From positions 9,300,001 through 9,364,000 of the forward strand of contig NC_090404.1 of assembly GCF_036365525.1 (NCBI RefSeq): 64,000 nucleotides of DNA, written 5' to 3'. Within the stretch, counting starts at the first letter, position 1. Each line of letters opens with the position of its first letter. The stretch is from Heterodontus francisci. Lineage: Eukaryota. A program made the position numbers and the translations under genes. Positions 1-57,371 of the stretch are shown piece by piece. Under the pieces are notes generated by a model, which saw only the letters and a list, made by a program, of their open reading frames with translations, searched no databases and was not told where the DNA came from.

Positions 1-57
1 TACAGGTTCCTATCAGGTAATCTCTGCATATCTACTTTTCTCTCCTGTGCTTATTCC

Positions 58-3793: not shown

Positions 3794-4228
3794 ATGTATT
3801 ACTCGGTACAAATGAATCTATTATCCGTCATTTTGACGCTGCTAACATGTAGGTACAGGAGCCGTATTCAATAACCCGCGGTGATTCTTTTTTTTATTCA
3901 CGTTGCTTCAGCGTTTAATGATCTGAATGCTTTTACAGGTCGATGCCTCTCGGACCGAGTGTTCCAGTCTCCGGCTGCGCGAACAGTCCAGAGCGGGGAT
4001 TCGGTGCAGCTGAACTGCAGCTATGAAATGTCGAGCATTTACGGCATGCATTGGTACAAACAGAAATCCGGTCACGGACTGGAGTGGGTCATAAGGCGAG
4101 CATCAGCTGGGAGGGAGAGAAGTGGGCGATTTAAATTGGATCTTTCCACTGCGGCCAAACGCGGCCAACTGGTTATTGAAAACACGGAGAGCGCGGATAT
4201 GGCGGTGTATTACTGTGCGATAGAGCCG
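3794..4228 (+). CDS. TRAV/DV: TCR V segment V1, apparently functional (leader 3794 or 3812 to 3848, V exon 3939-4228)
   Basis: Phase-1 GT at 3849 and ttttacAG at 3938; DRVFQSP..LNCSY..MHWYKQ..DMAVYYCAIEP; RSS cacagtg 4229-4235, 23-bp spacer, acaaaaaca 4259-4267. Confidence 0.92.
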
Positions 4229-4289
4229 CACAGTGAGAGGAAACGCGGCAGTCACTGTACAAAAACATTCCTCCTGTTTACAGTTCCGG

Positions 4290-4380
4290 AACAGCTGCAG
4301 CAATCTCTATAATAACACAGGGCAGGCAAAGGCGGGTCGGAGTGAGAGCAGCAAATGGAGGCTGTGAGCGGGGCTGCCGC
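4290..4380 (-). promoter_or_regulatory. Orphan copy of the type-A V upstream (promoter) module, antisense to V1
   Basis: Homologous to 5672-5755 upstream of the V2 leader (gcaatctct..aataacacagggcag..aaaggcgggtcggagtgaga); no leader follows. Confidence 0.7.
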
Positions 4381-4589
4381 GGGCAGGATTATTGCAGAGT
4401 CTGTCTCTATAATTCCCATTGGATAGCGGGTTTGATCAGAGATACTGACGGTCACAGCATAAAGTATCCGACTGAGGAGCCAGTCACTCCGCGAGTGTAG
4501 TCTTTGCTGTGAGAATAGCTTCAACATTGCTCAGTTGTGGGATTATATTCAATGATGCCGAATCGGTCTCTACACAGAATGTTTAATTT

Positions 4590-4830
4590 TTGTTTATTCC
4601 TTTATGGAGGTGGGTGTCGCTGGCAAGGCCAGCATTTGTTGCCCATCCCTATTTGCCCTCGAAAACTGAGTGACTTGCTTGGCCATTTCAGAGGGCAGTT
4701 CAGAATCGACCACATTGCTGTGGGTCTGGAGTCAGATATGGACCAGACCAGGTAAGGACGGCAGATTTCCTTCCCTAAAGGACATTAGTGAACCAGATGG
4801 GCTTCTACAACAATCGATGATAGTTTCATT
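4590..4830 (-). mobile_element. Shark SINE fragment (possibly SacSINE1/DeuSINE-like)
   Basis: ccacattgctgtgggtctggagtca..ggtaaggacggcagatttccttccctaaaggac, also at about 46465-46540; tail shared with the CR1/L2-group LINE. Confidence 0.55.
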
Positions 4831-5010
4831 ACTGACAGATGTAGCTGATATTGTGATTTAACATTAGAAAATGACAAATATTCTAAATAATTATTTTGCT
4901 TCGATTTTCACACTTCACCGCCCTTATAACTGACTTCAGCTGGCGGCGCTTACGATCTACATAGCGGCGGGAGTTCCTGTACGAGCATTTACCTGATTTC
5001 CATCAGTGTG

Positions 5011-5562
5011 AGCCTCAGGGCGCAGTAATAAACTGCAGTGTCGGTCAGCTGCAGCCCTGAGATGGTTAAACTGGTGAATTTTGCCAAGCGGTCGAGTTGT
5101 GCTGAGAAGCGGATTTTGGCAAACTCTGCTTTATCTTCAGAACCACTTGCGTATTTCATCAGAATAAACTCAGGTTGTGTGTCTGGCTGTTGCCGGTACC
5201 AGTACAAATTATAGCTGCCGCCCCGTGTAGTATTATAGGTACAGTTTAAAGTGACCGCTTGTCCTTCTGTCTTAACACCTGAGGACAGCGGCTGAGTGAC
5301 AGAATCTCCATGACTCAGATCTGAAAAACATGTTCAAACAGGAAAGGATCAAACACACAGATGTTTAATATTCAGGTTCAAAACTTGTCGGAAAAGAGAA
5401 TAAGATTCGAAATGGGTTTGACCCAACTTTGACCCAACTTCGCCGTTTACAAACAATAATATGTAGGTTACAGCAGTCAGCCGGAGAATGGATTTTTACT
5501 GGGCCAAAATACTTACTGAGAAGTGATATAGTTACGAGGAATAGATAGAGACGGTTCCGCAT
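5011..5562 (-). CDS. TRAV/DV: TCR V segment V2 (leader 5562-5517 MRNRLYLFLVTISLL, V exon 5320-5011), open frame, weak RSS
   Basis: SHGDSVTQPL..LNCTY..LYWYRQQP..DTAVYYCALR; heptamer cacactg 5010-5004, 23-bp spacer, nonamer acaggaact 4980-4972. Confidence 0.92.
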
Positions 5563-5819
5563 GATGCTCCCTGAGTCTTTAACTCTGCAGTCCGGGAAAT
5601 CTTGCGCCGTAGCTGAATAACAGATCCCCGCCCCACTGCACTGCTGAACCAACCAGTGCTATCAGGGAACCGCGGCAGCTGCAATCTCTCCAATAACACA
5701 GGGCAGACAAAGGCGGGTCGGAGTGAGAACTGCAAACGGAAGCTGTGGGTGGGCCTGTAACAGGCAGTGTTATCACATGCAGAATCCGTTTGTGAGGAAC
5801 TGTTTCGCTGCCCTCACTT

Positions 5820-6380
5820 CAAAGAACAAAGAACAAAGAACAGTACAGCACAGGAACAGGCCATTCGGCCCTCCAAGCCTGCGCCGATCTTGATGCCTGT
5901 CTAAACTAAAACCTTCTGCACTTCCGGGACCGTATCCCTCTATTCCCATCCTATTCATGTATTTGTCAAGATGCCTCTTAAACGTCGCTATAGTACCTGC
6001 TTCCACCACCTCCCCCGGCAACAAGTTCCAAGCACTCACCACCCTCTATGTAAAGAACTTGCCTCGCACATCCCCTCTAAACTTTGCCCCTCGCACCTTA
6101 AACCTATGTCCCCTAGTAACTGACCCTTCCACCCTGGGAAAAAGTCTCTGACTATCCACTCTATCTATGCCTCTCATCATCTTGTACCCCTCTATCAAGT
6201 CTCCTCTCATCCTTCTTCGCTCCAATGAGAAAAGCCCTAGCTCCCTCAATCTTTCTTCGTAGGACATGCCCTCCAGTCCAGGCAGCATCCTGGTAAATCT
6301 CCTCTGCACCCTCTCTAAAGCTTCCACATCCTTCCTATAATGAGGCGACCAGAACTGAACACAATATTCCAAGTGTGGTC
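5820..6380 (-). mobile_element. CR1 LINE 3' end with (AAAGAAC)n tail
   Basis: EYCVQFWSPHYRKDVEALERVQRRFTRMLPG; heptameric tail at 5820-5842. Confidence 0.9.
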
Positions 6381-6810
6381 GCCTTATATTAAGTGGTTGA
6401 ATGGATTATTCTGATAATTTATTTGTAATTCCACTAACGGAACCCTCTGGAACCAGAGGTATTGGATTTAAGGTGAAGCTAGATAAGTAGATGAGGGAGA
6501 CAGAATTAGAAAGAGATGAAGTAAGGTGGGAGAGATTCGTGTGTAGCACAAACACTAGCACAAACTAGTTGGCCGAATGGCCTGTTCATGTGCATACATT
6601 CTATGTAATTTTCCAATCTAATCCTTCAAGTTCCCAGCGACAAGGATTGCATCCGCCTCTGCACCGGGCTGGTAAACAGGACAGGCCCCAGAGAGGAAAA
6701 GGAAACCCTTTAAAATTCAGGACCAAGCACATTCCTCTCACATCGAACCACCGGCTTCATTGTTTCTTGAATTCTCCAGTTTATTGACATTTATTTTAAT
6801 TTTTCTGCAG

Positions 6811-6914
6811 TTAAAGATCTGCAGGAGCCATCTGTGTCTGTCCTCCTGCCCTCGGCAGAAGAAGCCTCCGCTCAGAGGTTCCTCTCCCCCACCTGCTTAG
6901 TGAGAGGTTTTTCG
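6811..6914 (+). pseudogene. IGHM: Immunoglobulin mu heavy-chain CH4 exon, 5' fragment with intact splice acceptor
   Basis: ttttaatttttctgcAG then (V)[34 protein letters not shown], matching my recall of shark IgM Cmu4 ([35 protein letters not shown]); truncated by a satellite. Confidence 0.82.
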
Positions 6915-6919
6915 CTCTC

Positions 6920-7165
6920 CATCATCCCATCAAGCACTCCCAGGACAGAGACAGCACAGGCTAGGGATAGAGTAAAGCTGCCTCGACACTAGCTCACCAA
7001 ACACTCCCACAGCAGACACAGCAGGGGTTAGATACAGAGTACAGCTCCCTGTACACTGTCCCATCAAATACTCCTAGGACTGATCCAGCATGGGTGAAAG
7101 ACATGGTAAAGCTCCCTATAAACGCATTAAACGCTTCCAGGACAGGCGTGGCACGGGTTAGATAT
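6920..7165. repeat. ~65-bp shark satellite-like tandem repeat
   Basis: ccatcaaacactcccagga..cagcacggggttagatacagagtaaagctcc units; same family as 15200-15600. Confidence 0.75.
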
Positions 7166-7184
7166 ATAACAGACACACATGACA

Positions 7185-7560
7185 GGCATAAACCCTGGGA
7201 ATGATTCCGAGAGACTGGTGCATATCTGACAAAATATAACATCGAGCACAAGATCTGGGAATTATTCCAATAGCCTGGGGACATCTGAAACAACGGGAAG
7301 CACAAACCCTGGGAATGATCCCACAGCCCTTGGGCCTATCTAATACACCAAGGAAGACAACCCCTGGGAATGATCCCACAGCCCTGGGGCACATCTAATA
7401 CACCAAGGAAGACAACCCCTGGGAATGATTTCTAAAGCCTGAAGCCTATGTGACAAACATGGAGGCAGACTGTCTGGGTTGATTCCCAGAGCCTGTGGCC
7501 TAACAGACACAACAGAGAGCACAAACCGTGGGAATGTTTCCAGGAGACTGAGGCCAATCT
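7185..7560. repeat. ~55-60-bp tandem repeat
   Basis: accctgggaatgat(c/t)cc..agcc recurs about 7 times. Confidence 0.8.
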
Positions 7561-7898
7561 GATGCAGTGACTCTATCTTTGCATTTTCGGTTCTACACAC
7601 AACTCACAATCTCCATTTCTTCCGTCAGACACACACACACACACACATTCTCTCTACTTTTCTGTTCTACACATGCCCACCATCTGCTTCTACCTTTTCT
7701 GCTATACCCATTATCCCTGCTCCTCTGATAAATGTTTCCCTGGTGATCTCTGTTCCGCTCCATTCCCTCTGATACCATCTCGTTGATCAGCATCCCAGGG
7801 ATCCTCTCTCCCTGCTATATTCCCTCTGATACAATCTCCCAGAACTCACTGAACATCGTCCTAGGGATTGCCTCTCCCTGCTCCCTTACTGAACATAT

Positions 7899-8255
7899 GG
7901 GCGGCACAGTGGCGCAGTGGTTAGCACCGCAGCCTCACAGCTCCAGTGACCCGGGTTCAATTCTGGGTACTGCCTGTGTGGAGTTTGCAAATTCTCCCTG
8001 TGTCTGCGTGGGTTTCCTCCGGGTGCTCCGGTTTCCTCCCACATGCCAAAGACTTGCAGGTTGATAGGTTAATTGGCCATTATAAATTTCCCCTAGTATA
8101 GGTAGGTGGTAGGGAAATATAGGGACAGGTGGGGATGTGGTAGGAATATGGGATTAGTGTAGGATTAGTAGAAATGGGTGGTTGATGGTCGGCACAGACT
8201 CGGTGGGCCGAAGGGCCTGTTTCAGTGCTGTATCTCTAAATTAAAATTTAAAAAA
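7899..8255 (+). mobile_element. tRNA-derived V-SINE (HE1-like)
   Basis: A box tggcgcagtggttagc, B box gggttcaattc, V-domain gtggagtttgca..ctccctgtgtctgcgtgggtttcctccgggtgctccggtttcctcccac. Confidence 0.85.
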
Positions 8256-10232
8256 ATATAACCCCAGGGATCCTCTCTGCCTCCTCCATTCACTCTCATC
8301 CCATCTACCTAAACTCCATACCAGGGATCTGCCTCTGAGCTTCAAATCTTCACGACCTGAAGTTTCTCTCCTGGCCACGGGAACATCGCCGGAGGTTTCT
8401 GTTCAGACCCGAGTGTCTTCGGTATTTTCCTTCTAATGCTGAGCCGCTTTTTATCTGAACTCAAGAAATTCAGGCACGGGGTCTCCTGTGACTGAATATC
8501 ACAAGGGAGGGATTTTTTTTATTCATTCATGGGATGTGGGCATCACTGGCCAGACCAGCATTTTGTTGCCCATCCCAAATTGCTCTTGAGAAGGTGGTGG
8601 TGAGCTGCCTTCTTGAACCGCTGCAGTCCATGGTATGAACGCTCCTTCTGAAGTGCTCGGCATGATAGTTGGGAATGGGTGGCGTTGATGTTAGAACTCT
8701 TTCCCTGCCAAACCTCTCTCCCCGCTTCTCCCTCACCACCATCATTCAGGGTCGCCCGGCCCTCGACATTACATTTATCTTTAGCCGCCATCACTGTGAC
8801 TCCCGGTCTCCATCCTTTCCCCAGACTCGCGCGGACACACTGGGTGCACGGCTCTTTAAGATGCAAGGATTGGCCCCATCGGTCACTGCCCTGAGTCAGG
8901 GGTAACATGGGCTGAATGTAACCTGGAGACGGTCCGTGACCCCCTGACCCTGAATCAATGGGGGAAAACATCCAATCACGGTGTAGTGACGTAAAGAAAG
9001 TAGTGTGGCGTCATCCACAACAGGGCAAACCGGCGTCCGCCATTTATGTGTGACGTCACACATTGCTCATGTTTGCCAGTCATTTAAAAGAACGACTCGA
9101 TTCAAAGGAAAACCGACTTCGGTTTCCATCAAAATAACAACTCAATCTTAATCTACAAAAGCGCAGGTTTGGTCAGCGCGAGTATAGAAAGAGCTGTGCT
9201 TAAACCGGCTGTGGGTGTGAGCATGTGCTGCTCGTGCCACAGATAGAGGCTCTTCCCAGCCGTTGTGAATTGTGGAAGCTCCAGCCCTCCATAGCCCAGT
9301 CATTAACAGAGTCAATCCAAACTCAACCTCCAGCCGATAGCGACCCGCATTGTTAATCCCGACAGACATAAAAGTGAGGTACAACCCCGGTTAAGCGACA
9401 ACACAGAACAACATGTGTGCTAAACAGCGGAAGCAGCATGCCATGGACAGAGATAAGCAATCCCACAACAAACGAATCAGATCAAAGCTCTGCAGTCCTG
9501 CCACATCCAATCGTGAATGGCGGTGAACAATTATAACCTGAGGAGGAGGCTCCAAAAACATCCTCATCCTCGAAGATGGAAAAGCCCAGCACAAGAACGC
9601 GAAAGACAAGTCTGAAATATTTACAGAGCCATTTTTAGCCAGAAATGCCTAGTGGCTGATTTATCTCAGCCTCCTCCTGAGGTTCGCAGCATCTCACAAG
9701 CCATTATTCAGCTAATTTGATTCACTCCACGTGATATCAAGAAATGGATGAAGGCATTTGAGACAGCAAAGTCTTTGGGCCCTTGCAACATCCCAGCTGT
9801 CGTACTGAAGACTTGTGCTCCAGAACTAGCCGCATCCGTAGCCAAGATATTAGCATCTACCCGACTATGTGGAAAATTGCACAGGTATGTCCTGTCCATA
9901 AAAAACAGGACACATCCAATCTGACTAATTATCGCCCCAGCAGTCCATTCTCAATCATCAGCAAAGTAATGGAAGGTGTCATTGACAGTGCTGTCAAGCG
10001 GCACTTTCTCAGAAATAACCTGCTCAACGATGCTACGTTTGAGTTCTGCCAGGGCCACTCGGCTCCAGTCCTCATGAAAGCCTGGATCCAAACATAGTCA
10101 AAGGAGGTGATTTCCACGGGTGAGGTGGCAGCATTTGACGGAGTGTGGCAGAAAAGAGCCCCAGTAAAATTGAAGTGAATGGGAATCAGGGGAAAGCTCT
10201 CTACTGGTTTTAGTCATATCTAGTACAAAGGT

Positions 10233-11304
10233 GTTCCGTGTCAGTGCGCCATTTTCCCACACTCTCTTGGCCAGTCTGGACATAGCAGTGGAAGCCTTAC
10301 CCATGCGCTTGTTGATTTCTGCATCTAGAGACAGGTTACTGGTGATAGTTGAGCCTAGGTAGGTGAACTCTTGAACCACTTCCAGAGCGTGGTTGCCAAT
10401 ATTGATGGATGGAGCATTTCTGACGTCCTGCCCCATGATGTTCGTTTTCTTGAGGCTGATGGTTAGGCCAAATTCATTGCAGGCAGCCGCAAACCTGTCG
10501 ATGAGACTCTGCAGGCACTCTTCAGTGTGAGATGTTAAAGCAGCATCGTCAGCAAAGAGGAGTTCTCTGATGAGGACTTTCCGTACTTTGGACTTCGTTC
10601 TTTGACGGGCAAGGTTGAACAACCTGCCCCCTGATCTTGTGTGGAGGAAAATTCCTTCTTCAGAGGATTTGAACGCATGTGAAACCAGCGAGGCCTGGAC
10701 AACGTATGCCAGCCAAGAGCGACGTCTCAATTCATTCCATCTTCGCTGCCTTCGGAGAATACTTGGCATCAAGTGGCAGGACTATATCTCCAACACAGAA
10801 GTCCTTGAAGCGGCCAACACCCCCAGCTTATACACACTACTGAGTCAGCGGCGCTTGAGATGGCTTGGCCATGTGAGCCGCATGGAAGATGGCAGGATCC
10901 CCAAAGACACATTGTACAGCGAGCTCGCCACTGGTATCAGACCCACCGGCCGTCCATGTCTCCGCTATAAAGACGTCTGCAAACGCGACATGAAATCGTG
11001 TGACATTGATCACAAGTCGTGGGAGTCAGTTGCCAGCATTCGCCAGAGCTGGCGGGCAGCCATAAAGACAGGGCTAAATTGTGGCGAGTCGAAGAGACTT
11101 AGTAGTTGGCAGGAAAAAAGACAGATGCGCAAGGGGAGAGCCAACTGTGCAACAGCCCCGACAAACAAATTTCTCTGCAGCACCTGTGGAAGAGCCTGTC
11201 ACTCCAGAATTGGCCTTTATAGCCACTCCAGGCGCTGCTTCACAAACCACTGACCACCTCCAGGCGCGTATCCATTGTCTCTCGATATAAGGAGGCCCAA
11301 AAGA
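10233..11304. mobile_element. RTE-clade LINE with 5' inversion (10233-10686 minus, 10686-11304 plus) and 11-bp TSD
   Basis: RELLFADDAAL..ISLKKTNIM..FTYLGS on minus; SEAWTTY..FHLRCLRRIL..RLRWLGHV and a CxxC..H..H zinc finger on plus; TSD agtacaaaggt at 10222-10232 and 11305-11315. Confidence 0.9.
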
Positions 11305-11766
11305 AGTACAAAGGTAGATGGCTGTGCTTGTTCGAGGCCAATCTTTCCAGCTCCAGGGTGTGTCCTAGGCCCAAACATCTTCTGCTGCTTCATCAATGAT
11401 CTTCCCTCCATCATTAAGTCAGAAGTGGCGATGTTCACTGATGATTGCAGTGTTGAGTACCATTCAACTCCTCTGATACTAAAGTAGTCTGTGCCCACAT
11501 GGAGCAAGACATGGATAACATTCAGGCTTGGGCTGATAAGTGGCAAGTGACTTTCGCGTACGCAAGTGCCAGGCAATGACCATCTCCAACAAGAGACAAT
11601 CTAGCCATCTCCCCTTGACATTCAATGGCATTACCATCGCTGACTGACCCACTATCAACATCCTGGGTGTTAAAATTGACCAGGAACCTAACTACTGGTC
11701 GAATAAATACGGTGGCTACAAGAGCAGGTCAAAGGCTGAGAATTCTGCGGAGAGTAACGCACCTCA

Positions 11767-13487
11767 AAGAAAGAACAAAGAACAAAGAACAAAGATAATT
11801 ACAGCACAGGAACAGGCCCTTCGGCCCTCCAAGCCTGCGCCGATCCAGATCCTCTCTCTAAACATGTCGCCTATTTTCTAAGGTTCTGTATCTCTTTTCT
11901 TCCTGCCCATTCATGTATCTGTCTAGATACATCTTAAAAGACTCCATCGTGCCCGCATCTACCACCTCCGCTGGCAATGCGTTCCAGGTGCCCACCACCC
12001 TCTGCGTAAAGAACTTTCCACGCATATCCCCCCTAAACTTTTCCCCTTTCACTTTGAACTCGTGTCCTCTAGTAATTGAAACCCCCACTCTGGGAAAAAG
12101 CCTCTTGCTATCCACCCTGTCTATACCTCTCATGATTTTGTACACCTCAATCAGGTCCCCCCTCAACCTCCGTCTTTCTAATGAAAATAATCCTAATCTA
12201 CTCAACCTCTCTTCATAGCTAGCGCCCTCCATACCAGGCAACATCCTGGTGAACCTCCTCTGCACCCTCTCCAAAGCGTCTACATCCTTTTGGTAATGTG
12301 GCGACCAGAACTGCACGCAGTATTCCAAATGTGGCCGAACCAAAGTCTTATACAACTGTAACATGACCTGCCAACCCTTGTATTCAATACCCCGTCCGAT
12401 GAAGGAAGGCATGCCGTATGCCTTCTTGACCACTCTATTGACCTGCATTGCCACCTTCAGGGAACATTGGACCTAAACACCCAAATCTCTCTGCACATCA
12501 ATTTTCCCCAGGACTTTTCCATTTACTGTATAGTTCACTCTTGAATTGGATCTTCCAAAATGCATCACCTCGCATTTGCCCTGATTGAACTCCATCTGCC
12601 ATTTCTCTGCCCAACTCTCCAATCTATCTATATTCTGCTGTATTCTCTGACAGTCCCCTTCACTATCTGCTACTCCACCAATCTTAGTGTCGTCTGCAAA
12701 CTTGCGAATCAGTCCACCTATACTTTCCTCCAAATCATTAATGTATATCACAAACAACAGTGGTCCCAGCACGGATCCCTGTGGAACACCACTGGTCACA
12801 CGTCTCCATTTTGAGAAACTCCCTTCTACTGCTACTCTCTGTCTCCTGTTGCCCAGCCAGTTCTTTATCCATCTAGCTAGTACACCTTGGACCCCAAGCG
12901 CCTTCACTTTCTCCATCAGCCTGCCATGGGGAACCTTATCAAACGCCTTACTGAAGTCCATGTATATGACATCGACAGCCCTTCCCTCATCAATCAACTT
13001 TGTCACTTCCTCAAAGAATTCTATTAAGTTGGTAAGACATGACCTTCCCTGCACAAAACCATGTTGCCTATCACTGATGAGCCCATTTTCTTCCAAATGG
13101 GAATAGATCCTATCCCTCAGTATCTTCCCCAGCAGCTTCCCTACCACTGACGTCAGGCTCACCGGTCTATAATTACCTGGATTATCCCTGCTACCCTTCT
13201 TAAACAAGGGGACAACATTAGCAATTCTCCAGTCCTCCGGGACCTCACCCGTGTTTAAGGATGCTGCAAAGATATCTGTTAAGGCCCCAGCTATTTCCTC
13301 TCTCGCTTCCCTCAGTAACCTGGGATAGATCCCATCCGGACCTGGGGACTTGTCCACCTTAATGCCCTTTAGAATACCCAACACTTCCTCCCTCCTTATG
13401 CCGACTTGACCTAGAGTAATCAAACATCTGTTCCTAACCTCAACATCCGTCATGTCCCTCTCCTCGGTGAATACCGATGCAAAGTAC
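11767..13487 (-). mobile_element. Young CR1 LINE (RT domain to 3' tail), nested
   Basis: KSPGPDGIYP..NYRPVSLTSV..YMDFSKAFDKV..GVPQGSVLGP..FADDTK; (AAAGAAC)n tail. Confidence 0.93.
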
Positions 13488-15199
13488 CTGTCCACAAGGC
13501 ACAAGTCAGGAGTGTATTGGAATACTCTGCACTTGCCTGAATGGGTGCATCTCCAACACCACTCGAGAAGCTCGACACCATCCAGGATAAAGCGGCCCGC
13601 TTGATTGGCACCTATCCACCTCCTTGAGCATTTAGGCCCCACAGCACCAAGGCACAGTGGCACAAGTGTGTACCATCTACAAGATGCACTGCAGCAACTT
13701 GCTAAGACTCCTTCGGCAGCACCACTGTTGCTTGGTCAAAATCCTGGAACTCCCTCCCTAAAAACTCTGTGGGTGTACCCGCACCAGATGGCCTGTCCAA
13801 ACTGCTAGCTCGCCACCTCCTTCGGGGCAGTTAGGGATGGGAAGCAAATGCTGCCCTGTCCTGAGACCATCACATCCCATGAAAGAATAAAAAAGACTGA
13901 GAGGGTGCTTTTGAGCGGAGAGAGTCTCTGAGCAGATTGGAGACCGAATCCGGGACATCACAGGAGGCGGTGACTGCTCATCAACCAAAGATGGATTGAA
14001 GCAAAGAAAGGGAATAAAGTAATTCTACTGGTCTCCGTGATAACAGGCGGATAATATATTTAACCCCTACAGTGTTAAATAACATTGAAGTTTTTTTTTA
14101 TATAACAGAAAGGGACAGACGTTTCAAATATCGCGCCATTCACGGCTTCAGAACGTTCAAAAGCATCTTGCAGCTAAAGAAGCATTTTGCAGGTGTAGTC
14201 GCTGTTCCAATGCAGGAAATATTATTTACGCAGAGTGAGGTGAGAATGTTTAATTGTCTGACAGAAAGTTTTGCCAATCTGACACTTGTGGAGGAGTAAG
14301 AGGATTTGGAAGTCCAGGAACTTTCCAGATTATTTCAATTTATGGTCAATAATGAAGCAACATCCGGTCACAAAACAATCGATGCAATTGTCTGCATATT
14401 TGTCTGTTTATGTATTATTAAGAACCATTTTGAACGGAAGAATTGTTGTCTTTCATCTTCGGGCGACAGTGGCATTAGATTAATGAAAAACAATGATTCC
14501 GACAGTTCACTGTCTCAGTCAACAATGCCATAAGACCTGTCATTTGCTCTCGCCGTTTGCGGTGTTATCACACAGGAATGTTTCCTGTAATCTCCAGCTG
14601 TCACCTGTGAAGCCAATAAACTGACGGCTCTGCAACTTTTGGGCAAAAATGAGGTGCTGGAGCGCCATCCAGTGGCGTCAGGTGGTAAATGGAATCCTGT
14701 CTGTGAAACATTTGGATTCTCAATTTATGAGTGAAACTGTTGCATGATCATGTTGAGCTGTTATTACGTTAGAGTACAATAGTTGTCATTGTTTTATTTT
14801 TATTATCACTGTGACTGCTGCGATTTTATTGTTTTACTGTTACTACCGTTAATATTTTGTGTTAATTCTGAGATTTCGTGTCTCAGTTTTCTGGTGTGCC
14901 CAAGTCACTAACACATTACATGTTCAATTGCATACATTAGACGGACTTTACGTTAATAATTGCTCAATTCATCTGCCTGGATTTTTAATGTCATAACAGT
15001 GGAAGACTTTCGACCTCTCAAATTATCAAATACGGAGATCAAGCAATATTCAGTAACTCTATGACACGAAAGTGATCAATATTTTGCTGTTGAGGTTTTA
15101 TCTGTATATTGGAACAAAACACACACACACACACGCGCACACTCACACACGCATATAAATATAAACCATCCCATTCGGGAGCATCATGAGTGAGGAAGC

Positions 15200-15600
15200 A
15201 AAGCTGCCTTTACACTGCCCCACCAAACACTCCCAGAGTAGGTACTATATGGGATAAATATTGAATAAAGATTCATATACACTGTTGTATCAAACACTCC
15301 CAGAGCAGGTACAGTATGGGTTAGATGTAGAGTAAAGACCCCTGTGCACTGCCCCATCAAACACTCCCAGAGCAGGTGCTATAGGGGATAAATATTGAAT
15401 AAAGATCCATATACACTGTTGTATCAAACACTCCCAGAGCAGGTGCCGTATGGGTTAGATACAGAGTAAAACTCCATTTACAATATCCCAGTAAACTCTC
15501 TGAGGGCAGGTACATCACGCGTTAGATACAGAGTAAATCTTTCTCTGCACTGTCCCAACAATCACTCCAGGGCAGTTACAGCACGAGATAATATACAGAG
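15200..15600. repeat. ~65-bp satellite-like tandem repeat, about 6 copies
   Basis: caaacactcccagagcaggt..gggttagatacagagtaaa repeated. Confidence 0.85.
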
Positions 15601-20492: not shown

Positions 20493-20749
20493 TATATGTT
20501 TGGTGAGGTAACCCCACAAGATACTCTGGAATTCCTACAAATGTGTTCACCCAAAGTAGTGGCACCATTAACATTCAGATCTTTGTTAGATGACACTATA
20601 CGACAATATTGCAAATCTTATTTTTTTAACTGTAAACGGAGACTTGAGGTGGTGAGGATGAAAAGTACTGAACAGATTGAGAAGTATTCCAGTTATTGTA
20701 CAGGATGTTTCACGCTTTGTGCATCCTCCCATCCCCAATACACCCTCTG

Positions 20750-21125
20750 ACTGAAGCCGCGGTTTCCCGCCCACCGTGAGTATTATAACTCCTCTTTCTG
20801 TTAAGAAACACTCCGAGCCATCCGCTCATATCGGTTGTTCTGCCCTGACAGAGGAAGATTATAAATTGCGGCTCCCGGTCCGGTAACTGATGGTACCACA
20901 CCATCCAAGCATTGTGTCTGGTGGCGGCAGTGCACCGGATTTGAACCGCTTGTCCCTGAACTGCAGTCACCTGCTCGGTGTGGGACATCCCGTCCTCACC
21001 ACGGACCCTGTTAATGCAAGACAAAGATGCAAATCTTTCAATAGCTTTATTTTCATGCCCAGTCTCCTAAGTTCAGAACAGCCACATGAGAATAAGAAGG
21101 TCAATGTCCCAACTGGACGCACCGT
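20750..21125 (-). pseudogene. TRAV/DV: TCR V pseudogene V5 (degenerate leader, frameshift, no 3' end or RSS)
   Basis: EQVTAVQGQAVQIRCTA..MVWYHQLPDREPQFII; homologous with its upstream region to 39480-39830. Confidence 0.8.
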
Positions 21126-26040: not shown

Positions 26041-27706
26041 CACACTGAGACACAGCGGATGCGGAAAAAAACCCACGTTGAGAGTTCCAGTTAATGCTCA
26101 GCAGAGGGCGCTCTCACACCGATCAACAGAAGCAATAGTTCAGACTCCTCAGTGAGAGTCACAGGGACCTTCTTAAAACTGCCACAAAGCACAAACCTCA
26201 ACAACAGGCGTAGTCCACTTGCGCGGTTATCTTAGTCTGTGGTTACAACTTACACGTATCATAAAATGAGCTTTACAAATCGATTTGTGATGCATTTATT
26301 CACCTCTTGTCTTTCGATGCCCTTTCCCTGCCTACACACTTTACCCATAATTGTATACATTTCCTTATTACACTCTTTAGATTACAGATATAAACACCTG
26401 TGCCTTCATTCAGACCCACTCCAACACAGCTACCCATAGATTCAGCCCTGGTTTAAACCAACTTCACTGAGGGAGATTTTGCTTATTATTGCATAATATA
26501 CTAGCACTCCTGTCCCGATCCTGCTTTCCCCCAATATGTAATGAATGTGGCAGTGTTGCAGCTCTTATAGAGAGCCCGAGTTATATAATTGCTGACGATA
26601 TTATTATTTAATTCCGCTCTTGACAAATGGATACTTCCCCCAGAAACCCCGCCCTTTGCTGTCTCTCTGACCTGTGAGCGGAAGGAGTAGAAGATGTGGA
26701 AAATAATATTAAAATGTGACTGACAGACACACCCTGGGACCTGATTTCTGAATCCATTCACTGTACCGTTAGTGGAGATCGATGGTAAAGGAGAGAACGA
26801 CAAACCGACACCGCCTGTATTTTGTTTCTTTTTCTGCTCGACACGTTTTTCGATTCTGAGTGACAGTTGTAAGGACAGTTTTTCATGTCCTGCTGCTATT
26901 GGGTTCTTGTTATGAGAATCGTCCTGCACCTCACCCTGGAGTCTTTGAACCCGCTCCCCGCGCTCTGCTCCCGCCACTTTCAACCAATGAGCGGCAAATT
27001 GCTAAAAGCCCCGATTCGCCGCTCCGTCGATTCTCTCTCATCGCTAATCCAACATCTGTAGATTATGGTTGTTTAATTTAATCATTACTAACAAAAGGAA
27101 TGTCGGGGTTCAATAGAAATAATTTAAACAACATTTTAAATGGAAACTAGGGTAGAGGGCGGTACTGGAAATGGTGTTTAAATTACAGCGAGAGTTTATT
27201 CTTTATGTGTGTTCAGTTGTTTGTTCAGTAACAGCAGATATCATCGTTCTAATAAGACCAATCTATAAATCACTCCGACAAACGACAGAATCATTGTTAG
27301 TTCACTAGTTAACTGATCGGTGAGAGAAATCTCACTGGAGTCACGGTTACCAGTGTGCTGATGGTGAGGTTACTGGAATTTGAGAGGAAGAATTGACGCC
27401 AGAATAAACCAAATCCATTAACAATCCCATGTTTCCTGTTACAATAACCAGACAAGGGTTTCAGTCCCCGCCCCACGTCTCTAACAGTGGAACCAGTCCC
27501 CATATAAGGACAGTGACTGTCGCCCAGCTCGGGGTGTTTCCATTCACTGACAACCAGCTCACCACCTACCGCTCTCACAGTACCACTGAGGACACAAGGA
27601 AGTGATGTCAGAGCATTCTGAGACACGACAGCAGATTATTGAGGGTGGGGATTAGAACGGGTGTCTTCAAATATCCAACTCCCCTTTTACAGAGCTGACA
27701 GCAACA

Positions 27707-28169
27707 ATGCGGCTACTCAGCATCTGGGTTGTGTGGGGAGCATTTCTGACAGGTAATTGTGGATTAAATACATTTAATCTTTTCTCTCATTTCACAAACA
27801 TGCTTTAAATACGATTTTTGAACACCCAGTCTGACCTTTTCCTGTTTAACCATGTTTTTCAGATCGGAGTCATGGAGATTCTGTCACTCAGTCGCTGTCC
27901 TCAGATGTTAAGACTCAAGGGGAAGCGGTGATTTTAAGCTGTACCTATGATACTACACAGAGCAACTATTATTTATACTGGTACCGGCAACACCCAGATA
28001 CACAGCCCGAGTTTATCCTGAGGAAATACACAGGCGGTGCTGAAAATAAAGCAGATTTTGCTAAAACCCGTTTCTCTGTAAAGCTCCAGAAAGCGACTAA
28101 ATTCACCAGTTTAACCATCTCGGGTCTGCAGCTGACTGACTCTGCCGTGTATTACTGCGCCTTCAGCCT
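27707..28169 (+). CDS. TRAV/DV: TCR V segment V10, apparently functional (leader 27707-27752 MRLLSIWVVWGAFLT, exon 27863-28169)
   Basis: SHGDSVTQS..LSCTY..LYWYRQHP..DSAVYYCAFS; RSS cacagtg 28170-28176, 23-bp spacer, acaaaaact 28200-28208; GGAAGTGATGTCA (ETS plus CRE-like decamer) at 27598-27610. Confidence 0.94.
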
Positions 28170-29377
28170 CACAGTGATGGAAAGCAGTCTCACCCCTGTA
28201 CAAAAACTGCCTTTGGACTGTGGGTGGGAGCTCCTGTCTGTTGTCGGTTGTGTAGAATCGCGGGCAGATGCAGCCACAATGTGCAGCGCACTGTCAGGCG
28301 CTCAAACACACACCGAGAGGAAACCAAATTAACCTCGGATCAAACTGTCACCCAACTGTTTCCAGGAGCGGCCGAGAAAACAAACTGCAGAATCCAATCA
28401 GACAGACAGATCCAGCACAGAATCATATTTGAAAACATTAGTTCTAAACCCCACCCTCAATAATCTGCTGTCGTGTCTCAGGATTCTCTCACCTCACTTC
28501 CTTGTGTCCCCAGTGGTGCTGTGAGACCGGTAGGTGGTGAGCTGGCTGTCAGTGAATGGAAACACCCCGAGCTGTGCTTCCGTCAGAGTCCTGATAGGGG
28601 AATTGTTGAACGTTTAGAGACCAGGGGTGGGTATGAAACCCTGGTCTGTCCATTCTCACCAGCAAGCTCGGGATTGTTAATGGTGACACAAACCATCCCA
28701 GGATTAAGGAGACATGCTGAAGCACAATGGTGATTGAGGGGATTTTGTGCTTGGGGCTTGTTTTAAATATCACAGACACTACCTTGTGGAATCTGTTCAT
28801 TGTGGCCTGCTCCTGCTCCTAATTCGCATGTTCGTATGTTCGTAATCCCCAAGCACAGAGTTCCCCCAATGTTCATTGTTCTTCAGGATGTAGAGTTTTC
28901 TGGCGATAAATAACGGACAATGGTTTCATTCTCACCCCAGTCTGTAAAAGTGAAAGGGACCCACTATCAGGACTCTGACTGGAGCCCAGCTCAGGGTGTT
29001 TCTATTCACTGACAGCCAGCTCACTTGCCAGTCTCACAACACCACTGAGGACTCGAGGAAATAAACTGAGAGAATCCTGAGACATTATTGAGGGTGGAGA
29101 TTAGAACACGTGCTTTCAAATATGATTCTGTGTTGGATTTCTCAGTCCGATTGGATTCTGCAGTTTGTTTTCTCGGCCTCTCCTGGAAACAGTTGGGTGA
29201 CAGTTTGATCCGAGGTTAATTTGGTTTCCTCTCGGTGTGTATTTGAGCGCCTGACAGCGCGCTGCACATTGTGGCTGCATCTGCCCGCGATTCCACGCAA
29301 CCCCAACAGACAGGAGCTCCCACCCACAGTCCAAAGGCAGTTTTTGTACAGGGGTGAGACTGCTTTCCATCACTGTG

Positions 29378-29842
29378 AGGCTGAAGGCGCAGTAATACAC
29401 GGCAGAGTCAGTCAGCTGCAGACCCGAGATGGTTAAACTGGTGAATTTAGTCGCTTTCTGGAGCTCAGCAGAGAAACGGGTTTTAGCAAAATCTGCTTTA
29501 TCTTCAGCACCGCCTGTGTATTTCCACAGTATAAACTCGGGTTGTGTATCTGGGTGTTGTCGATACCAGTATAATGTATAGCTGCTCTGTGTAGTATCAT
29601 AGGTACAGTTTAAAGTCACCGCTTCTCCTTCTGTCTTAACATCTGAGGGCTGGAGCTGAGTGACAGAATCTCCATGACTCCGATCTGAAAAACAAGTTTA
29701 AACAGGAAAAAATCAAACCAAGTCTGTTGAAAATTCAGGTTTAAAACATGTTTGTGAAATGAGAGAAAAGATGAAATGTGCTTAGTTCACAATTACCTGT
29801 CAGAAATGCTCCCCACACAACCCAGATGCTGAGTAGCCGCAT
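29378..29842 (-). CDS. TRAV/DV: TCR V segment V11, apparently functional; inverted duplicate of V10 (leader 29842-29797, exon 29684-29378)
   Basis: Same leader; LNCTY..LYWYRQHP..DSAVYYCAFS; RSS cacagtg 29377-29371, 23-bp spacer, acaaaaact 29347-29339. Confidence 0.94.
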
Positions 29843-31099
29843 TGTCGCTGTCCGCTCTGTAAAAGGGGAGTTGGATATTTGAAGACACCCGTTCTAATCC
29901 CCACCCTCAATAATCTGCTGTTGTGTCTCAGGATTCTCTCACCTCACTTCCTTGTGTCCCCAGTGGTGCTGTGAGAGCGGTAGGTGGTGATCTGGCTGTC
30001 AGTGAATGGAAACACCCCGAGCTGGGCGACAGTCTCTGTCCTTATATGGGGAATGGTTCCGCTGTTAGAGACGTGGGGCGGGGACTGAAATCCTTGTCTG
30101 GTTATTGTAACCGGAAACATGGGATTGTTAATGGGGTTGGTTTATTCTGGCGTCAATTCTTCCTCTCAAATTCCAGTATCTTCACCATCAGGGCACTGGT
30201 AACCGTGACTCCAGTGAAATTTCTCTCACCGATCAGTTAACTGGTGAACTAACAATGATTCTGCATTTTGCCGGGGCCATTTTTGGATCCGTCATATTAG
30301 AACGATGATCTCTGCTGTTTCTGAACAAACAACTGAACAGAAATAATGAATAAACTCTCGCTGTAATTTAAACAATGTTTCCAGCACCGTCCTCTTCGCT
30401 GGTTTGCATTTAAAATGTTGTTTAAATTCTTTCTGTTGAATTCTGACATTCCTTTTGTCCGTAATGACTAATTTAAACATCCATAATCTATAGATTTTGA
30501 GAGAGTGTTGAGAGAGCGGCGAATCGGGGCTTTTTGGCAATTTGCCGCCCGTCGGCTGAAAGTGGCGGGAGCAGAGCGCGGGAAGCGGGTTCAAAGCCTC
30601 CAGGGTGAGGTGTAGGGCGGATCCTCTTCACAAATGCTCAACATCGGCAGGACATGAAAGACTGCCTTTGCAACTTTTACACAGATTGGAAAAACCAGTG
30701 GAGCAGAAAAAGAAACAAAATACATGCGGTTTCAGTTTGTCTTTCGGTCCTTTCGCATCGATCTGCACTAACGGTACAGTGAATGGATTCAGAAATCAGA
30801 TCTCAGCATGTGTCTGTCAGTCACAGTTTGATATCCTTTCCACATCTTCCACACTTTCCACTCACTTGTCCTGCTCACTGGTTAATATTAGAGTCCGTCC
30901 TTCGATATGTGGATGCTTGTTTGTGTTGATTATTGGTCAATGTAACTTCTCAAACCCATTGAGCTAAGTTGATTTCAGGTACATTATTCCAAAATATCCT
31001 TAGATTTTGGGGAAACAGAAATGAACTCACTGTTATTACTGCTCTAGACATGTTTCTCTATACATCATATTTGGCCCTATCTCCTCTATTATTGCACTG

Positions 31100-53979: not shown

Positions 53980-54504
53980 ATGTTGGTTGTTGCTTTGTAT
54001 TCATTCCTCACAGCTACAGCTCTCTTAACTGGTAAAGTTTACATGTTTTCATTTTTTCTTTTGAAGTATCACTGACATAGAAAATCTACTTTTTAAATGT
54101 TTCTTTTCTCTATTTACGACGGATTCTGTTACATTTATATTAGTTGTAATAAAGTGATAATAAAAGCTTAAAGTTCTGTATTTCTAAATTTCTGTAGGTG
54201 TTCGTTGTGCAGACTCGGTCTCACAGGAGCCGGGTGCAGTGATGCAGGTTGAAGGAGACTCGGTGACCATTAATTACAACTATTCGACCACTGCTAATTT
54301 CTATTCCTTACAACTGTACCGTCAGGACCGGGATAAATCCCCCCTAATCTTAATCTACATCCCTTCTGCTGGAGAGGTTTTCAGAGCAGAGGGCGTGGGC
54401 AATCGATTTTCTGCATCTCTCGACACTTCGAAAAGTGAGGGGAATTTCACCATCCGTGACCTGCGGCTGTCTGACAGCGCGATGTATTACTGCGGGCTGA
54501 GAGA
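53980..54504 (+). pseudogene. TRAV/DV: TCR V segment V16, ORF lacking Cys23 (Tyr) and Trp41 (Leu) (leader 53980-54031, exon 54198-54504)
   Basis: DSVSQEP..VTINYNY..LQLYRQ..DSAMYYCGLR; RSS cacagtg 54505-54511, 23-bp spacer, acaaaaaca 54535-54543. Confidence 0.9.
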
Positions 54505-54906
54505 CACAGTGACAGGAACCAGAGGGAGCCTCGTACAAAAACACTGCCTCAGTGTGACAAGGTGAACGGAATAGCAGGCAGTGTGGGGTGAAACACGGAG
54601 TGTCAGTATTTATCACAGGAGAGTTTATTCATATAATAATCTTGATATTAGTTTCATAAAAATATATTTGATTGGACTGTTCTTCCAATCTCTGTTTATT
54701 TAATGGACACCTTAACTTTCAAACTTAGTGGAGCAAATATCAAACTAGTACTCAGTGTGCGCCAGAGTCACAATCAGACCTGGCACTCTAGCTAGTATGA
54801 AATGAACTGAACAGAGGGGAGACATTCAGTCACTTCATCGAGGAAAAACCCTTCAGAACAGCGAAGTCTCCTCAGAACTGTGAGGCCGACAAACTCAGGT
54901 CCTAAT

Positions 54907-55364: not shown

Positions 55365-56985
55365 ATGTTGAGGAACCGACTAGAGAACAGGCTATTTTTA
55401 TATCTAGTATTGTGTAATGTGAAAGGGCTAATTAATAATCTTGTTGCAAAAGAACCTTTAGGGATGAGTGACCATAATATGATAGAATTTTACATTGTGT
55501 TTGAAAGTGAGTTCAATCTGAAGCCAATGTGTTAAATTTGAACGAAGGAAGCTATGAAGTTATGAGGGGCAAATTGGCTGAGGTAGATTTGGAAAATACA
55601 TTAAAAGATATGACAGTACATAGGCAATGGATAGTCTTTAAATAAAATATTACATAGTTTACAGCAACTATACATTCCTTCAAGGCACAAAAACCCCAAA
55701 AGTAAAGGCAGTCAACGTGGAAATCAAAGGAAGTTACGGGTTATATAAGATTAAAAGAAAAGGTCTATAAAGTTGCCATAAATAGTAGTAAACTTGAGGA
55801 TTGGGAGGATTTTAGAATACAGCAAAGGAGGGTGAAGAAACTGATGAAGAAAGGGAGAATAGAATATGAATGTAATCTTGCAAAAACATCAAAACGGACT
55901 GTAAAAGCTTCTACAGGTACGTAAAAAGGAAACGTTTGGCTAAGACAAATGTGGGTCCATTACAGGCAGAGTCAGGAGAATTTATAATGGGGAATAGAGA
56001 AATGGCAGAGAAGCGAAATGATTACTTGTGTGGGAGGACCAAATGCAGTATTTCCAAGTTCGCGGATGACACAAAACTAAGTGGGAATGTATGTTGTGAG
56101 GAAGATGCAAAGCGGCTTCAAGGGGATTTGGACGGACTCAATAAGTAGGCAAGAACGTGGTAGATGGAATATAATGTGAAAAAAATGTGAGGTTGTCCAC
56201 TTTGGTAGGAGGTACAGATGTGCAGAGTATCTCTTAAATATTAAGAGATCCGAAAGTGTATATGCAGAAAGGGACCTGGGTGTCCTTGTCAATAACTCGA
56301 TGAAAGCTGACATGCAGATGCAGCAAGTAATTAAGAAGGTGAATGGTATGTTAGCCTTTATCACAAGAGGATTTGAGTACAGGAGTAGCAAAGTCTTACT
56401 TCAATTGTAAAGAACCTTGGTTAGACCGCACCTGGAATACTGTGTGCCGTTTTGGTCCCCTTACCTTAGGAAGGATATTATTGCCATAGAGGGAGTGCAA
56501 CGAAGGTTCACCAGACTTGTTCCCGGGATGGCGGGACTGTCCTATGAAGAGAGATTGGAGAAACTGGGCCTGTATTTTCTACAGTTTCGAAGAATGAGAG
56601 GTGATCTCATTGAAACTTACAAAGTATTTAAAGGGATAGACAGGGTAGATGCAGGTAAGATGTTTCCCTTGGTTGGGGAGTCCAGACCCAGGGGACATAA
56701 TTTCAAAATAAGGGGGAAGCCACTTAGGACAGAGATGAGAAGAAATTTCATCACTCAGAGGGTTGTGAATCTTTGGAATTCTCTACCCCAGAGGGCTGAG
56801 GAAGCCCAGTCATTGAGTATGTTTAAAGTAGAAATGCATAGATTTCTAAATACCAATGATATAAAGGGATGTGGGTATAGTGTGGGGAAAAAGGCATTGA
56901 AGTGGATGATCAGCCCTGATCGTATTGAATGGCGGGGCAGGCTCTATGGGTTGAATGGTCTACTCCTGCTCCTATATTCCTCTGA
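55365..56985 (+). mobile_element. CR1 LINE, internally deleted
   Basis: EPLGMSDHNMIEF; KFADDTKL; VRPHLEYCVPFWSPY. Confidence 0.9.
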
Positions 56986-57371
56986 TTGGGAACAAATAGC
57001 TTGGGAACGAAAAGATAGGATTACATGCTATGGGAAGCAATGAGAGGATTTCATCATTATAATGTAATTTTTTGAGATACAAATGCGACAGACGTGCTTT
57101 TATATGTGATCAAAAACTCTAAATCCCCTCAATGACCTCGGGTTGACTAGAATCCGCCAGCAGACGGCGCCAAACTCAATATGGCCGTTCTGGAGTCATG
57201 TGATGCCAGCGCCAACGCCAATAGGGATCGCAGCCTGAGTGAGGTCACAATAGGACCGCCCCCTGCAGTGTGTCCGTGGAAGAATGAGCTGAACAGGCAC
57301 GGGTTACCTCTGTCCCTTTCTCAATCTCTGGCTCATTCCATCTCAATTCACTGAAAGAGATTCAGTCAGAC

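Follow-up and report, generated by a model that had tools for sequence, protein, structure and literature searches.

A truncated IgM Cmu4 exon with its upstream intron, very probably a dead genomic relic, in a TCR alpha/delta V array of Heterodontus francisci

In the 64-kb stretch of Heterodontus francisci DNA analysed here (the window), a 300-bp piece lying among TCR alpha/delta-type V genes is very probably a dead relic of genomic IgM heavy-chain sequence and derives, unspliced, from an IgM cluster. Judged by sequence comparison, its coding part is IgM Cmu4. The view that this copy has decayed rests on its truncation and on a single Leu-to-Pro change, read over 100 coding bases. The features on which the analysis draws are the following, in window coordinates:

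3939..4258, forward strand: V exon of V1, which is transcribed and is the closest TCR-type V gene on this strand
~6435..6610, forward strand: 3' tail of a LINE, 5'-truncated, directly abutting the IgM intron piece
6611..6810, forward strand: what is left of the Cmu3-Cmu4 intron, with a pyrimidine tract and CAG acceptor at its end (6790-6810)
6811..6910, forward strand: 5' fragment of the Cmu4 exon, phase 1, encoding the first 33-34 residues of the domain
6911..7170, no strand assigned: high-copy repeat with a period of ~67 bp, in place of the remainder of the Cmu4 exon

A pyrimidine-rich tract (6790-6810) with CAG at 6808-6810 stands directly before the exon start at 6811, and since the first two exon bases (TT, 6811-6812) complete a split codon G|TT that is followed by AAA GAT CTG, the exon is phase 1. 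The first Cys codon occupies 6894-6896 and the fragment ends just beyond it, with the break between the IgM reading and the repeat at 6910/6911. On the forward strand the frame stays open for ~60 codons (6813-6992) and runs to a TAG at 6990-6992, inside the repeat, where it ends by chance. In these respects the preliminary description, which had reported a polypyrimidine tract with AG at 6810, a phase-1 exon, a cut by a satellite after the first Cys and a frame end at 6990-6992, is borne out by the letters and by the translation of 6813-6992, the satellite corresponding to the ~67-bp repeat beyond the break. It erred in stating that the frame is absent from the ORF list, where a 52-aa ORF at 6834-6992 is present at a min_aa of 20. 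The Leu located two residues before the Cys, which is kept in 14 of 14 compared IgMs, is Pro in the window (6888-6890), a change found in none of the 14. The stretch 6594-6920 is unique within the 64 kb. What is left does not amount to an intact C1-set domain with both Cys, the conserved Trp and a secretory tail after it, and the fragment cannot form a folded domain, as it encodes only the domain start, to just past the first Cys. Pfam returned no family and no C1-set call for the 34- and 59-residue translations, a query too short for it.

We searched the 34 window residues with phmmer against 1.84 billion representative proteins and obtained 9 matches at E<=0.001, the best of them at E 1.1e-07, a likeness well outside what chance would give. 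The best matches were shark IgM heavy chains, aligned at the start of their last C domain. P0001, a VH-CH1-4 chain with a mu secretory tail at its end, showed 84% identity to the window peptide at residues 420-450 of 545, and P0005, a chain that ends with a mu transmembrane segment, showed 87% identity at residues 319-348 of 468; the source names among the relatives of these two include "immunoglobulin M heavy chain" (Triakis) and "immunoglobulin mu heavy chain" (Ginglymostoma). P0016, another of these relatives, recorded as "Ig heavy chain C region, membrane-bound form" from Heterodontus francisci itself, matched the window in tblastn with an E of 6e-11. When aligned to individual domains, the peptide fell on the CH4 start in each of the 14 IgMs, sharing 18-27 of its 34 residues and scoring 90-128, as against 34-50 for the next-best domain in each chain. 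The best match is hence the CH4 of IgM- or mu-named proteins, clearly over the other CH domains. A phmmer search of PDB with the same 34 residues yielded Ig C domains only, headed by the terminal CH domains of IgG and IgA, to which CH4 corresponds in IgM. P0016 reads Val-Lys-Asp-Leu exactly where the window has (G)TT AAA GAT CTG, so that acceptor and phase fit the Cmu3/Cmu4 boundary, the exon boundary in P0016 being one that is deduced and does not come from genomic DNA. The piece thus offers a phase-1 acceptor at the Cmu3/Cmu4 boundary with the gene's own intron before it. The identity proposed earlier, shark IgM CH4, holds: the best matches in phmmer and tblastn are named Ig mu CH4 domains, and paralogue contigs continue as Cmu4, as described below.

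For read evidence we used Logan contigs of four runs, namely a DNA run (X1), two RNA runs (X5 and X6) and a run from another species (X7). X5, from the same animal, is confirmed as RNA by an exact spliced V1 contig (3848 to 3939), and X6, which belongs to the same study, was taken as RNA. Depth in the exon bin 6709-6885 reached 432,964 in X5, 59,600 in X6 and 192 in X1, where single-copy depth is ~6. These bin depths indicate that a gene family with very high expression matches the exon at a likeness of 88% or more, and the X1 depth of 192, at this likeness threshold of >=88%, corresponds to a few tens of copies. Identity and break point are both fixed by the way in which the paralogues go on: 48 X5 contigs and 6 X6 contigs depart from the window exactly after 6910, with an agreement of 1, and encode SPREIFVKW, which is the next CH4 stretch in P0001, P0005 and P0016.

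The paralogues share the intron as well. Contigs of X5 (6695-6818, 14 differences in 124), X6 (6645-6772, 14 differences in 128) and X7 (6765-6903, 12 differences in 139) cover parts of the intron piece, and paralogue variants are listed from 6634 onward, at an X1 depth of 28-200 compared with ~6 for single copy. Since the intron is common to multi-copy paralogues back to at least 6634, the piece cannot be counted as a processed retrocopy; no fewer than 177 bp of the intron (6634-6810) are kept, and Cmu3 sequence is absent. In X5 the bin 6532-6708 has a depth of 54, about 1e-4 of that of the exon bin, and is therefore intronic in the genes that are expressed. The "decayed Cmu3 end and donor" that had been suggested at 6694-6702 was accordingly abandoned, as this stretch has intron depth in the RNA runs and gives no significant tblastn match to CH3. 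The piece resembles a processed (retro-)pseudogene in that an expressed gene has left a truncated copy without function at an ectopic site, and differs from one in that the intron is kept and the preceding exon is missing, which implies that the source was not spliced mRNA. The earlier argument that the retained intron rules out a retrocopy therefore stands for the processed kind, but not for RNA-mediated copying as such: intron retention alone does not exclude the latter, because a LINE tail abuts the intron on its 5' side.

This LINE tail (6435-6610) carries the family motif GGCCGAATGGCCTGTTC and one ATTCTATG unit, which together we take to be a CR1-type tail. It aligns with LINE tails at 5700-6010 (-), 11800-12100 (-) and 56800-57100 (+), its stretch 6571-6593 matches 5870-5848 (-), and high-copy read depth extends over it up to ~6531. 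A further fragment of this LINE family, inverted, occupies 5773-6372 (-). Copies of the family sit between V genes across the whole window; fragments with reverse-transcriptase ORFs that share the GGCCGAATGGCCTGTTC 3' tail are found, besides the one at 5773-6372 (-), at 11858-13663 (-) and 56417-57043 (+). On the other side of the piece, Tandem Repeats Finder reported a 67-bp-period array at 6924-7074, with related copies of the repeat at 15197-15583 and an X1 depth of ~96,000. The 67-bp-period repeat (6886-7240 and 15197-15583) is also abundant in contigs of the RNA runs, reaching a depth of 2e5-4e5 in the bin 6886-7062, part of which stems from the IgM exon bases 6886-6910. A tandem array with a period of 55 bp lies at 7186-7562; its ~3-7 copies are 68-84% alike, and the DNA run covers it at single-copy depth. 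It is followed by (AC)n at 7629-7647.

We infer that the relic arose as a side effect of the birth-and-death turnover of the IgM clusters that are interleaved with TCR V arrays in this chromosome region. Some 200 bp from the Cmu3-Cmu4 intron, acceptor included, together with the initial 100 bp of Cmu4 would have been copied, unspliced, from one of many IgM clusters, and would have come to sit in the TCR alpha/delta V array, cut on the right by the 67-bp repeat and bounded on the left by the LINE tail. As to the form in which it arrived, our guess, held with slightly less than even confidence, is that deletion and repeat invasion reduced a whole or partial cluster to the relic. A sizeable minority of our confidence goes to a piece that has been small ever since it arrived, transduction associated with the LINE included, and what remains goes to an origin of some other, unspecified kind.

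LINE 3' transduction itself we consider unlikely. It supposes a LINE that lay in the Cmu3-Cmu4 intron of the donor, in the orientation of the gene, and was transcribed through its own end, whereupon the read-through RNA, with the remaining intron and the first part of Cmu4 in it, was reverse-transcribed into the TCR V array; the predicted outcome is a 5'-truncated LINE tail followed by unspliced IgM flank, RNA-mediated despite the intron. Order and orientation agree with this prediction, the LINE tail at ~6435-6610 (+) being followed by 6611-6910 (+), and there is no other IgM piece nearby. Moreover, one X5 paralogue contig appears to span ~6597-6708 and so to reach into the last bases of the LINE tail, a hint of the same LINE-intron junction in paralogues. 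However, the X6 paralogue contig stops matching at 6645, so that the left limit of homology is placed only tentatively. No target-site duplication or terminal tail was seen by eye around ~6435 and 6911. LINEs with a CR1-type tail depend on their own 3' end to be reverse-transcribed, and if this holds for the present family, read-through copies should be rare. A template-switch chimera between LINE and mRNA was rejected, as it would place the LINE tail 3' of the captured sequence and not 5' of it.

Turning to the surroundings, the window contains ~14 V exons on both strands that are TCR alpha/delta-like and show W-Y-R-Q and D-S-A-V-Y-Y-C-A motifs. In single-stretch PDB comparisons a typical V exon matched TCR alpha with 72 bits and TCR delta with 59-64 bits, and these single-domain matches confirm the location within a TCR V array, here of alpha/delta type, that had been claimed. 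With 12 IgM heavy chains as tblastn queries against the 64 kb (E<0.1), the only C-region match was 6810-6914, and no Cmu1-3, no Cmu4 remainder and no TM exon emerged. A motif scan of 4300-14000 on both strands gave nothing credible for the Cmu4 remainder, a six-frame search of the window gave no J-like motif, and no RSS heptamer was found near the piece, the CACAGTG at 7905 falling in a high-copy repeat, probably a SINE. The other parts of an IgM minicluster (V-D-D-J-Cmu1-4-TM) are thus not found in cis. The inserted IgM minicluster envisaged in the preliminary description receives no support from these searches, which turned up no other IgM piece, no J and no nearby RSS, nor from V1, which is not VH-like.

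Of the TCR-type V genes on the same strand, V1 lies nearest to the piece. Its leader is spliced from 3848 to 3939 over a 90-nt intron (X5 contig, 0 differences), and its V exon ends near 4258, ~2.55 kb upstream of the fragment on the same strand, in agreement with the 2.6 kb given before. FR2 of V1 contains an Ig-like GLEWV motif, and the gene's PDB matches fall about equally on VH and TCR alpha. Against shark VH it scored 48.9 bits, which lies mid-range among the V genes of the window (23-55), so that V1 is not a recent VH. V1 was accordingly rejected as an IgH-derived V, since it resembles VH no more closely than its fellow V genes in the window do; a word-based search for relatives of V1 returned nothing. 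It may be one of the 'intermediate' V domains mentioned in PMC12227049. We regard it as very unlikely that a single IgM cluster collapsed and that V1 and the Cmu4 stub are what survives of its two ends: there is no D or J remnant between them, and V1 is not closer to VH. If it were true, the V gene of the cluster would have been taken over by the TCR alpha/delta locus, and the arrangement would be a snapshot of the donation of Ig-type V segments (e.g. TAILV) to TCR delta.

That the fragment is still used as an exon strikes us as highly improbable. The 6810/6811 acceptor would have to take the phase-1 leader donor of V1 or of another upstream V gene and give rise to a leader-Cmu4-stub transcript or a small secreted peptide. 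The acceptor is intact and its phase does match the V leader donors, as had been pointed out; V1 is transcribed, with its leader donor at 3848 in use in X5; and the frame is open for 60 codons. However, no joint into 6811 occurs among the joints listed (15 of ~900), and the product would lack most of the domain and carry Pro in place of the conserved Leu before the Cys. In addition, six listed intron positions (6634-6768) distinguish the copies, and at all six the X5 and X6 contigs carry the paralogue base without exception, so that, judged by these intron positions, there is no sign of transcription of the window copy. The fragment is expected to be without function.

Equally remote, in our estimate, is an origin not from IgM but from an IgW or IgNAR terminal CH exon, or from the C exon of a TCR or light chain. 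All C1-set domains start alike, 34 residues are a short query and Pfam made no call, which leaves some room for another isotype; yet the identity to IgM CH4 starts was 79-87%, compared with 31-58% for all non-IgM matches in the search of 1.84 billion proteins, which counts against it, as does the continuation of the paralogues in RNA as IgM CH4 sequence. Our direct domain comparisons were with IgMs only.

We give as little credence to a chimeric assembly join or read artefact that would have misplaced IgM-cluster sequence into the TCR V array, a notion invited by the high-copy repeats on either side, where assemblers can mis-join: X1 contigs at 6353-6798 and 6793-7219 match the window with 0 differences at the single-copy depth of ~6, and the intron part is ~11% different from every paralogue contig listed, which speaks for a distinct locus and not for a misplaced functional copy. 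Both the LINE/intron and the exon/repeat junctions therefore exist in short-read data. These contigs answer the misassembly concern raised earlier and rule out assembler error, though not a peculiarity of one individual, as X1 may come from the animal of the assembly itself.

How the relic compares with known arrangements can be stated point by point. With shark IgM Cmu4 (P0016) it shares exon start and phase (G|TT, Lys-Asp-Leu) and 27 of 34 residues, and with the expressed multi-copy IgM paralogues it shares the upstream intron, which is homologous. It departs from P0016 in comprising only the first 100 bp, without the second Cys and the secretory tail, and from IgM clusters in having no Cmu1-3, TM or VDJ with it in 64 kb and in the replacement of the conserved Leu by Pro. 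In elasmobranchs, IgH clusters occur in close linkage with TCR alpha/delta, with TCR-type V exons between them (PMC12227049); that study describes intact IgH clusters in four other species, and the word 'pseudogene' does not occur in it. Here, too, IgM-derived DNA adjoins TCR alpha/delta-type V genes on one chromosome, but as a 300-bp relic deep in a V array and not as intact clusters. TAILV and VH-delta are likewise IgH-derived sequences within the TCR alpha/delta locus, but they are functional V segments, whereas the present sequence is the stub of a constant exon.

Given the published interleaving of IgH and TCR alpha/delta (PMC12227049), an IgM stub among TCR V genes is debris of the kind to be expected. 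The relic is a real but ordinary pseudogene and not evidence of an exceptional Ig-to-TCR transfer, because shark IgM clusters and these V genes occupy one chromosome region. By itself the fragment matters little: it adds one pseudogene piece to those left behind as a large multigene family turns over. As a marker it is of modest value, showing that DNA of IgM clusters was laid down and eroded within the TCR alpha/delta V array and not only beside it, and it agrees with the published view of the elasmobranch antigen-receptor complex, where parts pass between Ig and TCR elements.

The V array itself presents some further observations. At 27309-30240 there is an inverted duplication, a palindrome-like pair that comprises near-identical V exons at 27934-28161 (+) and 29622-29386 (-) and near-identical 105-aa ORFs at 27309-27626 (-) and 29923-30240 (+). 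Three V exons look pseudogene-like, namely 42085-42327 (+), which has an in-frame stop (42136 region), 54188-54562 (+), in which the first Cys and the Trp of FR2 are gone (54386 region), and 20589-20995 (-), which has multiple stops in its extended frame (20980 region).
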